64,000 nt of DNA from Guillardia theta CCMP2712 (lineage: Eukaryota; Protista; Cryptophyta). This document shows, in pieces, positions 21,396 to 46,926 of the stretch (the stretch's first letter is position 1; the number at the start of each line of letters is the position of its first letter). The notes under the pieces are model-generated. The model was not told the origin of the DNA. It ran no database searches and saw only the letters and a list, made by a program, of their open reading frames with translations. The stretch lies in assembly GCF_000315625.1 (NCBI RefSeq), contig NW_005434670.1, positions 558,016-622,015 on the forward strand, written 5' to 3'. The translations under genes were made by a program, and so were the position numbers.

Positions 21396-21442
21396 AGGCC
21401 AGACGGATTCGAACCGCCCCCCTCGCGCCCTAGCGCTGGCCC
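21396..21442 (-). ncRNA. Miniature tRNA-like (mascRNA-like) element downstream of histone H3
   Basis: Minus strand reads GGGCCA-GCGC TAGG GCGC-GAGGGG-GGCGG TTCGAAT CCGTC-TGGCCT: 6-bp acceptor-like stem, 4-bp GG-loop hairpin, 5-bp T-stem with canonical T-loop, no anticodon arm. Confidence 0.7.
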
Positions 21443-21452
21443 TTGTGTGTTT

Positions 21453-21468
21453 GGTGTTGATGAACACC
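21453..21468 (-). promoter_or_regulatory. Histone mRNA 3' stem-loop (H3)
   Basis: GGTGTT-CATC-AACACC (6-bp stem, 4-nt loop) followed by an AC-rich flank, 38 nt after the H3 stop codon. Confidence 0.8.
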
Positions 21469-21506
21469 TGTATCTTGGTTCCTTGACCGTCTCGTCGTCC
21501 TCGAGC

Positions 21507-21917
21507 TTACGAGCGCTCGCCACGGATGCGGCGGGCAAGCTGGATGTCCTTGGGGAAGATGGTCACACGCTTGGCGTGGATAGCGCACAAGTTGGTGTCC
21601 TCAAAGAGACCGACAAGGTAGGCCTCAGAGGCTTCCTGAAGGGCCATGATGGCAGAGGTCTGGAAGCGGAGATCCGACTTGAAGTCCTGGGCAATCTCAC
21701 GCACGAGACGCTGGAAGGGAAGCTTGCGGAGAAGGAGCTCAGTCGACTTCTGGTAGCGACGGATCTCACGAAGAGCAACGGTTCCAGGCCTGTAGCGATG
21801 GGGCTTCTTGACGCCTCCGGTGGCGGGGGCGGACTTACGGGCGGCCTTGGTGGCAAGAGCCTTGCGGGGAGCCTTTCCTCCGGTAGACTTACGGGCAGTC
21901 TGCTTGGTACGCGCCAT
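21507..21917 (-). CDS. H3: Histone H3, intronless, replication-coupled-like (A31; S87-A-I-M90)
   Basis: 136-aa [22 protein letters not shown]...[10 protein letters not shown], nearly identical to canonical H3. Confidence 0.99.
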
Positions 21918-21947
21918 GGGTGATGGGAGGAGGGGCGAGGAGGCGGG

Positions 21948-21955
21948 TTTTAATA
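21948..21955 (-). promoter_or_regulatory. TATA-like box of the H3 gene
   Basis: TATTAAAA on the minus strand, ~30 nt upstream of the H3 ATG, in a GC-rich context. Confidence 0.45.
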
Positions 21956-44092: not shown

Positions 44093-44639
44093 TTTACTCA
44101 AGGCCTACCGTACGGCCGGGGCGGCCCGGCGGCCCGGCCCGTGCCAGACCGGGTCGATCCGGAGCAACCGGTGACCCCTACTAGGCTACGCTTTACGCTA
44201 TCACATTCTCTGGTTTAGGTAAAAGGACCCGGTGGTCCGCCTATTCGGGCTGACGACTTTTGGCCGCAGGGAAGAAACAAAGCCGTCTTTACTGGGTTCT
44301 GATCCTTGAGTAAATATTTTGCTATACTAAACGTTTACTCAAAAAGAATTTTGCCGGGGGGTAGGGCAAGTAATAGAAGGTGGGTACTATGATGAGGCAC
44401 AAAGGTGCTTGCTTTGTACCCGTACTTTCAAAATCAATTTTTGGGGGAAAAGGGGGTAGGGGTTATTGGGGCAGGTCAGTGAAATTGGGGTGGTAGGAGG
44501 CCGCAGTCAATGGCGGAGGGACGTGGAAGGGAGGGAAGTTGAAGAGAAGAGAGGCAGAAGAAGAAGAGATGGCGATGAAGAGATGAACTTTGCCAGACTT
44601 GTCTAGTGTGAAGCTGTTTGTCACCCTGCTTTTACAAAG

Positions 44640-46751
44640 ATGATGCGGAGTTTGCCTACATTTGCCTGGTTGCTTGGCATGGCGGTGTACATGCAGACCA
44701 CCGAAGGCTTCGGGTTTTCATTGCCCGGCAGGAATGGTTTGCACATGGGAAAAGGCCGATTTTCAAACGACCTAAAATGTGTCGGGAATCGAAGATGCAC
44801 AAAGCGCCATGTTCTCACTCCTGTCGCTCAATCATCAGGGGCGCAGGTTCTACAAGACGAGGATTTGAAGTCAGAGGGGAAGAAAGGTGATCCAGCAGGA
44901 GGATGGTGGAAAGATAGCAGTCCACAGAGAACAGTGGAACAAGCAAAGCTCAAGTATTTGAATCAGTTTCCAAATACTTGGCAACCGGCAGAGAGTCTAA
45001 CGCTAAAGCGCAAGGGAGACAAAAAGGACACGTACAAGACTGCAGGAGTTGAGTTTAAGACAGCAACTCCTGACAAAGTGTATGATGCAGCAATCGTAGG
45101 AACTGGTCCTGCGGCCATTGCCATGGCTGATGCCCTGGCTCTGGAAGGCATGACAGTTGCTGTTGTTGGGCCGATCGCAGGAGCGTGGCCCAACAACTAT
45201 GGCGTTTGGATGGACGAGTGGAGCGTGTTGGGTCTCCCCGACTCTTGCATCGAGTCGCAGTATGACACGACTAGGATCACTATCTCTAAAGGGAACAGCA
45301 TCAGCATTCCCCGCCCTACGGGAAGGTGAGCGGGCCCAAGACGCGCGAGTTCTTCCTCAGGCGATGTGCGGAGAACGGTGTCGAGGTCCTGGATGAGCTG
45401 GTGACGGACATTGTGCATGGGGACACTGAGAATCCCTCCGTCTTCAAGACGGCAGGCGGTGAAACCATCCGCTGCAAGGTGCCCGTAGTGGCGGCTGGTC
45501 ACTACTCGCCACTTGTCAAGTACCAGTCCCCTGGGGTGGAGTTCATGCGGATTGAAGGAGAGTACATGACGAGGGACTGGGGGAGGCTGCTGCAGGTGCC
45601 TCCCAACCAGAGGCCTGTCATCACCAACGAGTACGTCGAGTCGGGCCCCCTCTCTCAGCTGTCCTGGAAGCATAGCATCCAGTTCGACTCAGTGCGGCCC
45701 GGCCAGCATGCGTGGGGGTGGAACTGGGGGTGGAACCCTGTACTGCGTGGGCTCAAGGTTCCCAGCTTCATCCCACTCTTCGGGGACTGCGAAGCCATCG
45801 GAGGAGGAGCGCCAGGGTATCAGATTGCGTATGGAGTAACCGTCGAGTGCTCGGAGCCTCACGGCTTCCCCCTTGACGAGATGCTGTTGATGGACTTCAG
45901 CACCGACCACCTTGAAGGGGACGAGGAGCTGGAGGGAGGCATCGACGGGCACGTGCCGACCTTCCTGTACGCCTTCCCCTACGACGAGAAACGAATCTTC
46001 TTGCAGGAGACCCTCCTTGTAGCCAGGAACCATCGCGCGTTCGCCAAGTCTTTGCAGATGGAGGAGATGGTGAGGAGGGTGAACAAGCGAATCGAGAACC
46101 TCAAGCTGGAGGTCACCAAACAGTATGACGAGGAGTACTCGGTCATCCCCATGGGCGGCCCTCTGCCCGTCCTCGGCCAACCAGTGGTCGCTTACGGGGC
46201 TGCGGGTGTGATGGTACATCCAGCTAGCGGGTACATGATCAACAGGGCGATCTTGTGGGCCCCCGAGGTGGCGCGAGCTCTTGCCTCAACCCTCAAGGAG
46301 ACCAACAATGCTCAGCTCGCTACGGAGGCTGCATGGGAGGCCCTGTGGCCCAAGCAAAGGCTCATCGAGCGAGACCTCTACTGCTTCGGAATGGAAGTTC
46401 TCCTTGACCTCGACGTTGCTCTCCTGAGAGACTTCTTCTCTGCCTTCTTCGCTGACCCCAAGGAGAAGATGTGGAGACAGGTCAGCTCCTGCTGCCTCCT
46501 CAACACGTGCTAACTTTCAACTAGTTCTTAGCATGGAGCATGACTCGTCCGGGAGAGAAACCATGGAAGATGAGCATCTTCATGATTCTGCAATTCTTCA
46601 GAGGCTCTTGGCCCCTCAAAGCAAGACTTGTTCGAGAAGCCATGTTCAAGGTGATGATACTGTTCAAGACTTGATTATCTTCTCATTCCTTTCACAGGAT
46701 GGTCTTCATCTTCTCAAAAGCATTTTCGAGATGCCGTTCCCTTTCGATTAG
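44640..46751 (+). CDS. Plastid-targeted CrtL-type lycopene cyclase (beta or epsilon); apparent 1-nt frameshift at ~45315
   Basis: Signal peptide ...QTTEG-FGF; dinucleotide-binding YDAAIVGTGPAA; WPNNYGVWMDEW; PGYQIAYG; PTFLYAFP; ETLLVAR; EYSVIPMGGPLP; VHPASGY; FGMEVLL. Confidence 0.93.
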
Positions 46752-46859
46752 GATGTAAAGATAGCAAGTGTACAATCTCTTTATTTTCCATGAACAATTT
46801 TTCACCACTGGTAGCAACCCGTTATTTAGAGCTTTTATATGCTGTGCCAAGAACAAAGT

Positions 46860-46906
46860 TTCGATCAGGAGCGGACTCGAACCACTCAGTTTCCAAACTG
46901 ATCAAA
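46860..46906 (-). ncRNA. Miniature tRNA-like (mascRNA-like) element downstream of the histone H1-like gene
   Basis: Minus strand reads TTTGATCAG-TTTGGAAACT-GAGTGG TTCGAGT CCGCTC-CTGATCGAA: 6-9-bp acceptor-like stem, short GG-containing linker or hairpin, T-arm with canonical loop. Confidence 0.7.
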
Positions 46907-46911
46907 TTGGT

Positions 46912-46926
46912 GGTGTTAATAACACC
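46912..46926 (-). promoter_or_regulatory. Histone mRNA 3' stem-loop (H1-like)
   Basis: GGTGTT-ATT-AACACC followed by ACCAA, 59 nt after the stop codon. The stem is identical to that of H3. Confidence 0.78.

Follow-up and report, generated by a model that had tools for sequence, protein, structure and literature searches.

A histone stem-loop joined to a miniature tRNA-like fold behind the main histone genes of Guillardia theta: a candidate RNA 3'-end signal

Thirteen histone genes of the cryptophyte alga Guillardia theta are followed by a two-part cassette, composed of a histone-type stem-loop and, 1–12 nt further downstream in all 13, a miniature tRNA-like fold (the mimic) of 41–48 nt. Comparison of its copies rates the fold as a real and new structured RNA element, and a signal made of a hairpin and a mini-tRNA apparently has not been described so far. 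We propose that the cassette could serve the main histone genes as a two-part signal for RNA 3' ends, cut by tRNA-processing enzymes, a proposal that we judge evenly poised between right and wrong.

The window, by which we mean the whole 64-kb stretch of DNA that was analysed, contains two of the cassettes:

21507..21917, minus strand: histone H3 coding sequence, canonical type, 136 aa (open reading frame list; stop codon TAA at 21509-21507)
21453..21468, minus strand: H3 stem-loop GGTGTT-CATC-AACACC, 6 bp with a 4-nt loop; the stop codon is 38 nt upstream
21443..21452, minus strand: H3 spacer AAACACACAA, linking the stem-loop to the tRNA-like fold; its 3' edge is the predicted cleavage site
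21396..21442, minus strand: H3 mini-tRNA (covariance model R1, 34.2 bits, E 1e-6)
46986..47327, minus strand: H1-like gene, lysine/alanine/proline-rich, 113 aa (open reading frame)
46912..46926, minus strand: H1-like stem-loop GGTGTT-ATT-AACACC; the stop codon is 59 nt upstream
46904..46911, minus strand: H1-like spacer ACCAATTT, which shrinks to 5 nt if the acceptor stem is lengthened to 9 bp and is thus 5–8 nt long
46863..46903, minus strand: H1-like mini-tRNA, 41 nt (R1 match, 26.7 bits)

The H3 protein matches Pfam Histone with 157.9 bits (G000:C4:579537-579914). No Pfam domain was found in the H1-like protein, and exact-protein look-ups with the H1-like and H2B proteins returned no record. 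The H3 mini-tRNA is built from an acceptor stem (GGGCCA/TGGCCT), a D-like hairpin (GCGC-TAGG-GCGC) and a T-arm (GGCGG-TTCGAAT-CCGTC, with the loop TTCGAAT at 21413-21407), and contains no anticodon arm. Its H1-like counterpart has the acceptor GATCAG/CTGATC, an unpaired GG-containing linker and the T-arm GAGTGG-TTCGAGT-CCGCTC; the match has an E value of 1e-4 in the local R1 search and 0.12 across the whole genome. An earlier, sequence-only reading of this DNA had given the places and stem sequences of both cassettes correctly; all their elements lie on the minus strand. The fold of ~47 nt that it assigned to both genes is right for H3 (21442-21396); the H1-like fold is shorter, at 41 nt. Its view that no other gene of the window carries the element is supported, the covariance model matching these two places alone at E<0.01 in the 64 kb. 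An assembly gap (22944-23043) is separated from the H1 cassette by 24 kb and from the H3 start codon at 21917, to whose 5' side it lies, by ~1 kb. It is enclosed by the finding simply because the two loci stand on either side of it, overlaps neither gene nor element and has no bearing on the finding.

In single-sequence folding the H3 mimic gained little over its shuffles (z -0.1 to -1.4) and the H1-like copy clearly surpassed them (z -2.6 to -3.2); the fold energy of the H3 mimic, like that of several relatives, did not reach significance. Since these energies are weak, the case for the fold rests on comparison. The alignments scored for covariation comprised 26 distinct copies, some of this genome and some of metagenome relatives. 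They were model-based, were fitted to the model's own structure and include many paralogues, so that the statistics overstate independence: 86.8% of the cells are paired, versus 60.0% after shuffling, and changes on both sides occur in 16/16 pairs. The covariation score is 0.690 against 0.223; none of 500 shuffles reached it, and slid registers gave 0.135 at most. The copies of this genome alone give the same picture. This strong covariation supports the earlier claim that structure rather than sequence is conserved.

The fold displays the hallmarks of a tRNA, including a 5-bp T-arm, a 7-nt TTCRAnY loop, acceptor stacking and a GG. The T helix is 95–97% paired, and its loop reads TTCGA or TTCAA in nearly all copies. 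Acceptor and T stems stack to 11–13 bp, again in nearly all copies, with an unreliable parse of stack length for L006, L035, L066, L064, L058 and L068, of which L006 and L035 were read by hand. RNase P and RNase Z gauge tRNA by an acceptor-plus-T stack of that length. The D-like loop or the linker contains a GG in 13/13 copies, and the D-like loop with its GG could form the tRNA elbow; the D-like hairpin is 3–6 nt from the T-arm in this genome. The mimic retains exactly what tRNA-end-processing enzymes recognise: the 11–13 bp stack, the TTCRAnY T-loop and the D-like GG loop.

The 13 genes comprise two H3, three H4, five H2B, one H2A, one H2A.X and the H1-like gene, and every cassette is in sense orientation with the mimic at a fixed position behind the hairpin. 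Some of the H2B copies arose by recent duplication and share one cassette sequence, and in the H2A gene the spacer measures merely 1–2 nt. The exact GGTGTT/AACACC palindrome occurs 11 times in the whole genome, seven of them directly 3' of histone genes, and its reversed control three times; the hairpin loop is TTTC in two copies. Genome covariance searches recovered 13/13 cassettes with R1 and 12/13 with R2 (H1 missed), and outside the histone genes they added two clear matches and one weak repeated match. The further copies number 2–4 in 87 Mb, for a total of ~15–17. The element is therefore nearly restricted to histone loci. It is absent from seven variant or second-copy histone genes (an H2A copy on contig C1, an H2A.Z-like gene, three H3-like genes and two H4 genes on C58), whose downstream regions are AT-rich and AATAAA-like, features that the cassette genes lack. 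The cassette genes are presumably the main, replication-dependent histone genes, and the split into main genes with the signal and variants without it is the same as in animals. Downstream of the 13 cassettes neither a common motif nor a consistent T-run terminator was seen; the cassettes encode no CCA, and no conserved single-stranded purine-rich block was seen in their regions.

The sequence-only reading had left it to be asked whether the element extends beyond this genome. The same arrangement was found in other species, in marine metagenome contigs, where the cassette stands behind H3, H4, H2A and H1-like genes; on two contigs (L058 and L059) it accompanies a K/A/P-rich gene resembling the H1-like one. 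In these relatives the stretch between D-like hairpin and T-arm varies from 3 to ~60 nt, while acceptor stem, D-like hairpin and T-arm themselves persist. The contig of a close relative (L055) differs from the H3 locus by four substitutions and no indel in the 119 nt from the stop codon to 5 nt past the mimic, and one of the four converts a T-stem G.U to G-C. Directly after this point a 10-nt indel and many changes are found.

Database searches gave no name to the cassette. Rfam at its gathering threshold had no match in the entire window, and at E<=5 the 14 cassette loci gave merely three chance-level miRNA/sRNA matches. At the same E value none of these loci matched Rfam tRNA or RF01684 (mascRNA/menRNA), and the GGTGTT/AACACC hairpin did not reach the animal-based Histone3 model. 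ARAGORN predicted no tRNA at any cassette; it reported a single tRNA-Ala at 27817-27910, which is unrelated to the cassettes. A real tRNA gene, whether intron-containing or permuted, is ruled out, as there is no anticodon loop and the loop of the upstream hairpin has 3–4 nt; a canonical tRNA gene would have the anticodon arm and 7-nt anticodon loop that the cassette fold lacks. No matching paper on such a histone 3' cassette was found in the literature searched, and a 2026 eukaryote-wide survey of the histone 3'-end pathway mentions neither tRNA nor RNase P nor cryptophytes (bioRxiv 10.64898/2026.10.14.759114).

Public RNA data were inspected at one locus, an H2B gene that is neither of the window genes. 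There, RNA contigs unite the coding sequence, the hairpin and the mimic between silent flanks. In two runs, the contigs (mean depths 1707 and 2556) cross the predicted cut and the whole mimic, and raw reads of a third run, 42 of which were aligned here, also extend across both. The RNA ends 35–110 nt beyond the mimic, close to an ATAAAT-like motif. At the mimic 5' edge neither a pile of 3' ends nor loose ends were reported in the three runs, whose RNA selection is unstated; nor was an end reported at the acceptor 3' strand, past which the RNA continues for at least 35–50 nt. The earlier claim of an RNase P cut after the stem-loop is thus unsupported so far, the H2B RNA reading through without ends at the predicted site. 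The raw-read profile is 3'-biased and could be wholly due to polyadenylated RNA with its end near +110. Because the RNA selection of the libraries is unstated and one library appears 3'-biased, a non-polyadenylated cut form could have been missed. Abundant transcripts run through the element at this locus, which partly bears out an outcome that the sequence-only reading had counted against itself; a tail-less form beside them may have escaped these libraries.

Candidate processing factors are encoded in the genome. SLBP, listed earlier for a proteome check, is represented by an exon for the RNA-binding domain (PF15247, 30.2 bits, cut-off 27; C33:657668-657745), just downstream of which lies a motif resembling the rest of the domain. 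An open reading frame with PPR_long and PRORP domains encodes a PRORP. No match to U7 (RF00066) was obtained with 65 of 10244 candidates scored and the controls silent. Nuclear RNase P RNA (RNaseP_nuc) and the tRNase Z N-terminal domain likewise gave no match, in searches with few candidates, silent controls or intron-split genes.

From the observed anatomy, histone restriction, covariation, conservation and co-transcription, together with the SLBP-like and PRORP genes, we infer a course of events in which SLBP binding and every cleavage are proposed steps. Pol II would transcribe the histone gene through the cassette, in line with the co-transcription observed. RNase P, either the encoded PRORP or possibly a nuclear RNA-based enzyme, would cut at the 5' edge of the mimic and so place the mRNA end a few nucleotides past the hairpin, the presumed binding site of SLBP. 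RNase Z may then free the mimic of 41–48 nt. Uncut transcripts, probably a polyadenylated by-form, would be those that end 35–110 nt past the mimic in the available RNA libraries. In the H2A gene with its very short spacer, SLBP binding and RNase P access could compete.

The same RNA data suit a different role, in which polyadenylated histone mRNAs keep hairpin and mimic in their 3' UTR and the mimic is not the normal end-maker. It would bind a tRNA-recognising factor (for export or translation, a CCA-adding factor, or La) or offer a site for regulated cutting, by which the mRNA would lose its tail and be sent to decay once DNA synthesis ceases. RNA containing hairpin, mimic and the following 35–110 nt is abundant in three runs and has a defined stop near the ATAAAT-like motif at the H2B locus, and 3'-biased raw reads are what oligo-dT-primed fragments ending near +110 would give. 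We nevertheless consider this role unlikely, though a serious contender: conservation in the close relative breaks off sharply at the mimic 3' end, the 13 genes share no visible downstream motif, and AATAAA-like, AT-rich downstream regions mark the non-cassette copies instead. Moreover, judging from what is known of tRNA processing, a fold with all RNase P and RNase Z features would be hard to hide from those abundant enzymes. Conservation that reaches exactly the mimic 3' end plus ~5 nt would fit a mature mRNA that ends in the mimic, as some plant viral RNAs end in a tRNA-like structure; RNase Z would cut after the acceptor, possibly followed by CCA addition, and SLBP would hinder RNase P. 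Spacers of 1–2 nt could bar RNase P once SLBP is bound, and RNA spanning hairpin and mimic together is abundant. The same RNA, however, runs at least 35–50 nt beyond the acceptor 3' strand with no end reported there, and CCA is not encoded. We know of no cellular mRNA that matures by RNase Z with a mimic kept at its 3' end, and regard this ending as improbable.

The remaining explanations dispense with an RNA signal. The GGTTCGAnTCC core common to every copy fits the B-box consensus of TFIIIC and extra-TFIIIC sites, and both window genes have nearby convergent neighbours, where a boundary could help; the element might then be a DNA-level boundary or terminator, or the internal promoter of a Pol III small-RNA gene. 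A B-box alone is insufficient, because covariation extends to the acceptor and D-like stems, which no B-box would include. This covariation, the sense orientation and fixed place behind the hairpin in 13/13 copies, and transcription of the element within the histone RNA point to a function at the RNA level. A consistent downstream T-run terminator was not seen, and the D-like-to-T distance is far below the A-box-to-B-box spacing of tRNA genes. The DNA-level alternative that the sequence-only reading had offered is thus very improbable. Nor is it credible in more than the slightest degree that the element is a SINE or tRNA pseudogene, a dispersed repeat of tRNA origin brought near histone genes by chance or duplication. 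A few non-histone copies do exist and some recently duplicated H2B genes have identical cassettes, but there are ~15–17 copies in 87 Mb, 13 of them behind histone genes of five classes, and the copies have diverged with compensatory changes in an arrangement shared with other species. A dispersed SINE or chance tRNA pseudogene is rejected on these grounds, and the covariance searches and covariation effectively dispose of a SINE found equally at non-histone loci, the outcome that the earlier reading had named as fatal.

The 3' ends of MALAT1 and NEAT1_2 are made by RNase P at the tRNA-like mascRNA and menRNA (RF01684). As there, the cassette places a shrunken tRNA mimic in a Pol II transcript, directly 3' of a potentially end-protecting structure, and it keeps the acceptor, T-arm and elbow features for RNase P, RNase Z and the CCA-adding enzyme. 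The hosts here, in contrast, are protein-coding histone mRNAs, the mimic has no anticodon arm at all, a histone stem-loop takes the protective place of the triple helix with its A-rich tract, and cleavage is proposed while uncut RNA is abundant. The metazoan replication-dependent histone signal consists of a stem-loop and a histone downstream element, served by SLBP, U7 snRNP and CPSF73. The alga resembles this in that its main H1, H2A, H2B, H3 and H4 genes plus H2A.X have a hairpin of 6 bp and 3–4 nt close behind their stop codons, with the animal-type loop TTTC in two copies and a second element a few nucleotides downstream, that variants are without the signal and that an SLBP-like gene is present. 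The algal cassette differs in its GGTGTT/AACACC hairpin, which falls below Rfam Histone3, and in its downstream element, a folded tRNA mimic where animals have a single-stranded purine-rich U7 target. In animal mitochondria, tRNAs punctuate the transcript and RNase P and RNase Z cut mRNA ends at them. Comparable ends are made at the tRNA-like t-elements of plant mitochondria in Arabidopsis (PMC1920247). In the alga, too, a flanking tRNA-shaped fold would set mRNA termini and a PRORP-type RNase P would be available; those systems are organellar and polycistronic, whereas the cassette belongs to nuclear, monocistronic genes, is dedicated to one gene family and is tied to a histone hairpin.

Returning to cleavage by tRNA-processing enzymes, the most far-reaching version, whose chances we rate somewhat below even, is that cryptophyte-like algae mature replication-dependent histone mRNAs without U7. 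The mimic would replace the histone downstream element, RNase P (possibly PRORP) would make an SLBP-bound, tail-less end, one RNA of 41–48 nt would be freed per transcript, and the module would be reused on a few mRNAs such as that of a DDX6-like helicase gene. To our knowledge it has not been settled how stem-loop histone mRNAs are cleaved outside animals, in lineages from which no U7 is known, and the cassette is a concrete, testable candidate for the missing downstream signal of non-animal histone mRNAs. Even with no role in cleavage, the fold represents a new conserved structured RNA family that covaries strongly, accompanies a defined set of genes and has no model in Rfam. Should cleavage be confirmed, the histone genes would become the first case of a nuclear protein-coding family with mRNA 3' ends made by tRNA-processing enzymes, and the cassette would be a natural counterpart to MALAT1 3'-end reporters and a second, independent route to tail-less histone mRNAs.

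The H3 gene and an H1-like gene of the window are each followed on the minus strand by a cassette made up of a histone-type hairpin, a short spacer and a tRNA-like fold, as the sequence-only reading had described. The features are as follows.

Minus-strand cassettes of the window and their plus-strand neighbours
21507-21917, minus: H3 open reading frame, 136 aa, stop codon TAA at 21509-21507
21468-21453, minus: H3 hairpin GGTGTT-CATC-AACACC, 6 bp with a 4-nt loop, 38 nt past the stop
between hairpin and fold, minus: H3 spacer, AAACACACAA
21442-21396, minus: H3 fold, 47 nt; acceptor GGGCCA/TGGCCT, D-like hairpin GCGC-TAGG-GCGC, T-arm GGCGG-TTCGAAT-CCGTC
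20900-21322, plus: convergent neighbour of H3, ending in a stop codon at 21320-21322 that lies 73 nt from the 3' edge of the H3 fold
stop side at 46986, minus: H1-like gene for a lysine-, alanine- and proline-rich protein of 113 aa
46926-46912, minus: H1-like hairpin GGTGTT-ATT-AACACC
between hairpin and fold, minus: H1-like spacer, 5-8 nt
46903-46863, minus: H1-like fold, 41 nt, with GATCAG/CTGATC and GAGTGG-TTCGAGT-CCGCTC
44640-46751, plus: convergent neighbour of H1-like, open reading frames reaching 46751

No Pfam domain was found in the 113-residue H1-like protein. At the cassettes, ARAGORN called no tRNA and no Rfam family matched at E≤5, including tRNA, Histone3 and mascRNA-menRNA. A tRNA-Ala (GGC) of 94 nt, long enough to accommodate an intron, was called by ARAGORN at 27817-27910 on the plus strand, and the mini-tRNA model did not match it. 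An assembly gap (22944-23043) lies about 1 kb 5' of the H3 start and has no bearing on the finding; other N runs are at 2551-2754, 53082-53181 and 63167-63266. The single-sequence folding energy is unremarkable for the H3 fold and moderately good for the H1 fold, so the argument has to be comparative.

The genome comprises 87.1 Mb in 669 contigs, and the window corresponds to C4:558016-622015. Histone genes were collected over the genome with Pfam Histone, an H4 protein query and an exact hairpin pattern, and their flanks were inspected. They form two groups: 13 genes, of five histone classes, have the cassette and seven lack it. In all 13 carriers it lies on the sense strand shortly past the stop codon, and no histone gene in the census has the hairpin without the fold.

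Histone genes by cassette
With cassette: H3, two genes (C4, C16)
With cassette: H4, three genes (C32, C39, C89)
With cassette: H2B, five genes (four on C14, one on C49)
With cassette: H2A (C32)
With cassette: H2A.X, C-terminal SQEY (C79)
With cassette: H1-like (C4)
Without cassette: second H2A (C1)
Without cassette: H2A.Z-like gene (C324)
Without cassette: H3-like, three genes (C114, C47, C139)
Without cassette: H4, two genes (C58:181437-181742, L079; C58:230183-230491, L080)

One of the C58 H4 proteins is identical to the main H4 at 102 of 103 positions, differing at the last residue only, and the downstream region of its gene is AT-rich and contains AATAAA; the other is 80% identical. Both are candidates for replication-independent H4 genes. 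Across the genome the exact palindrome was counted 11 times, against three for the reversed control, and seven of the 11 are histone sites of the cassette class. An inverted duplication at C14:395115-396903 (L030) contains two identical H2B genes that point towards each other, with their cassettes about 830 bp apart; another identical copy, at C14:380.6 kb, departs from them about 10 nt past the mimic. The H3-like histone fold on C114 (161008-161388, L003; 150 bits) lies within a 945-aa open frame and has no cassette.

In 12 of 13 genes the bases ahead of the hairpin are ACT, and in the window's H3 they are CAG. The hairpin stem pairs GGTGT(T/C) with (A/G)ACACC around a loop of 3-5 nt, which is TTTC, the loop of the animal histone hairpin, in two copies. 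After an A/C-rich spacer of 1-12 nt follows the fold, consisting of an acceptor stem (5-7 bp), a D-like hairpin (2-5 bp), a linker (3-6 nt) and a T-arm (5-6 bp) whose 7-nt loop is TTCGAnY (TTCAAGT in H2A.X). GG is always present in the loop or linker of the D-like hairpin, often as TGGT. The acceptor 3' strand abuts the T stem without a gap, giving a stack of 11-13 bp in nearly all copies, and the anticodon arm is absent.

Covariation, which the sequence-only reading had anticipated, was found both in 26 distinct copies and in the 11 distinct copies of the genome itself.

Pairing and covariation of the fold (26 copies; 11 own-genome copies)
Cells paired, observed: 86.8%; 86.4%
Cells paired, shuffled: 60.0%; 61.0%
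Pairs changed on both sides: 16/16; 15/16
Covariation score, observed: 0.690; 0.706
Covariation score, shuffled: 0.223, observed score reached by 0/500; 0.260
Best slid register score: 0.135; 0.167

By helix, the paired share in the 26 copies is 95% for the T stem, 87% for the D-like hairpin and 79% for the acceptor, where the deficit is partly due to mis-registration by the model. These figures overstate independence because the alignments are model-fitted and the copies related; the effect is nevertheless large and lies in stems beyond any DNA-binding consensus.

Two covariance models of the fold were run over the whole genome; each run scored 150 of the roughly 21,000 candidates from a first look, so the match counts are lower bounds. 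The fold-alone model (R1) gave at least 15 matches at E≤10, including all 13 histone copies, the weakest being H1 at 26.7 bits, and at least two clear matches elsewhere. Among the matches scored, the proposed restriction to histone genes is close to complete. The second model (R2), built from 28 copies with other species included, recovered the same set without the H1 copy and added one weak repeated match of 25.3 bits, an identical pair at C5:983754-983799 and C85:125703-125748 (L074, L075). This pair has a D-like hairpin with GG, a T-arm GGGGG-TTCGACT-CCCCC and a wobble-rich acceptor, and its C85 copy adjoins an N run. A clean gap separates the members from all else, which argues against a large hidden family.

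Non-histone mini-tRNAs
C39:390392-390437 (L035:1501-1546), minus: 248 nt past the stop of a helicase gene
C145:51849-51893 (L034:1501-1545), plus: 40.9-47.3 bits, about 60 nt past the apparent last exon of an intron-containing gene

The helicase has DEAD and Helicase_C domains and is DDX6/Dhh1-like by eye. Since its mini-tRNA is also directly preceded by a hairpin, a different one of 7 bp (GGGGAGG-TAAAC-CCTCTCC), the hairpin and mimic module may serve outside histone genes. No convincing hairpin was seen 5' of the C145 copy.

Relatives were reached on metagenome contigs through the exact H4 or H3 protein and one pattern scan. The exact H4 protein is present on contigs of other eukaryotes, four of which (L046, L048, L050/51 and L053) have hairpin, spacer and tRNA-like fold; the fold is absent from the remaining exact-H4 contigs. 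Between D-like hairpin and T-arm, L048:1089-1176 and L050:1096-1203 contain 40-60 extra nt, so the middle of the fold is free to vary; the L048 insert folds as a long central arm at the position of the would-be anticodon arm. The exact H3 protein led to two relatives, one close (L055) and the other more distant (L054, T-loop TGCAACT). Over the 119 nt that start at the stop codon and include 5 nt beyond the fold, L055 differs by four substitutions, one of them replacing a G.U pair of the T stem with G-C, and has no indel; immediately beyond, there is a 10-nt indel and substitutions become dense. The pattern scan gave 15 contigs; upstream regions, where present, are mostly H3, H2A or K/A/P-rich H1-like, and two or three contigs resemble chance or non-histone matches.

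An SLBP-like gene, which the sequence-only reading had proposed to look for, is indicated by one exon on C33 whose RNA-binding domain match exceeds the Pfam cut-off (30.2 bits), with a motif like the remainder of the domain just 3' of it. A 613-aa open reading frame (C100:26351-28189) contains PPR_long and PRORP domains. Searches for nuclear RNase P RNA, U7 and the tRNase Z N-domain, with few candidates scored and with silent controls or intron-split genes, gave no match.

RNA was compared at one H2B locus that lacks a foreign convergent neighbour (L030:1001-1900).

1067-1444: H2B open reading frame
1481-1496: hairpin
1502-1548: fold

Contigs of runs X1 and X2 show transcript-like depth, zero in the 5' flank, thousands over the coding sequence and zero past 1600; run X15 is DNA-like, with a flat depth of about 7. 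High-depth contigs of X1 and X2 (1707, 2556) start at the end of the coding sequence, cross hairpin and fold and reach 1583 and 1598, the X1 contig having 30 additional letters without a match to the locus. Because RNA spans coding sequence, hairpin and fold, the fold is co-transcribed with the histone mRNA and uncut RNA is abundant, with ends 35-110 nt beyond the element, in these libraries, whose RNA selection is not on record. In the raw RNA of X20 (42 reads, first mate sense in all, strong 3' bias), depth falls from 10.2 just 5' of the hairpin to 6.2 over hairpin and spacer and to 4.4 and 3.9 over the fold, then stays at 2-3 as far as 1660 before reaching zero. This fall fits a cut fraction and the geometry of oligo-dT-primed fragments equally. 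The predicted mRNA ends are not supported by these data: RNA crosses the element, and among the 42 3'-biased reads no pile of read ends, joints or loose ends was reported at the locus, the fold's 5' boundary included. Over window positions 21250-21950 the RNA runs have a word share of 0.93-0.97, not assignable to a strand because of the convergent plus-strand neighbours.

In tRNA, the features recognised by RNase P, RNase Z and the CCA-adding enzyme are the 12-bp minihelix and the elbow formed by T-loop and D-loop. The fold retains exactly these parts, and its would-be anticodon-arm position tolerates anything or nothing. The fold is obligatorily coupled to a histone hairpin; it occupies the position of the U7 target of animals, and it is restricted to the class of genes whose animal counterparts use the tail-less pathway. 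The simplest explanation is that of the sequence-only reading: RNase P would cut at the fold's 5' edge to leave an SLBP-protected mRNA end, the read-through RNA being a polyadenylated by-form or a precursor. With read-through RNA abundant and no cleavage seen, we give this explanation about an even chance. Animal histone genes likewise yield RNA of this kind, which is over-represented in poly(A)-biased libraries (for example PMC5100578 and PMC3661734).

The abundant uncut RNA would also suit a fold that stays in the 3' UTR of polyadenylated mRNAs as one of its elements, perhaps as a regulated cut site, a distinctly less probable arrangement given roughly one chance in four. An end made by RNase Z, with the fold kept on the mRNA, is improbable, since RNA at the H2B locus continues past the fold. 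The T-arm motif could instead act as a DNA-level B-box, to which the covarying stems outside any such consensus are opposed, making it more doubtful still, and a dispersed repeat is scarcely credible, 13 of the few copies matched lying behind histone genes.

A literature search found no description of a tRNA-like element behind histone genes, subscription journals being mostly outside the search, so that an older account is possible. The latest survey of how histone 3' ends evolved (bioRxiv 10.64898/2026.10.14.759114) does not mention tRNA, RNase P, Guillardia or cryptophytes. The 3' end of MALAT1 and those defined by mitochondrial t-elements are set by a tRNA mimic; what is new relative to both is that the mimic would here be wired into the histone stem-loop pathway.
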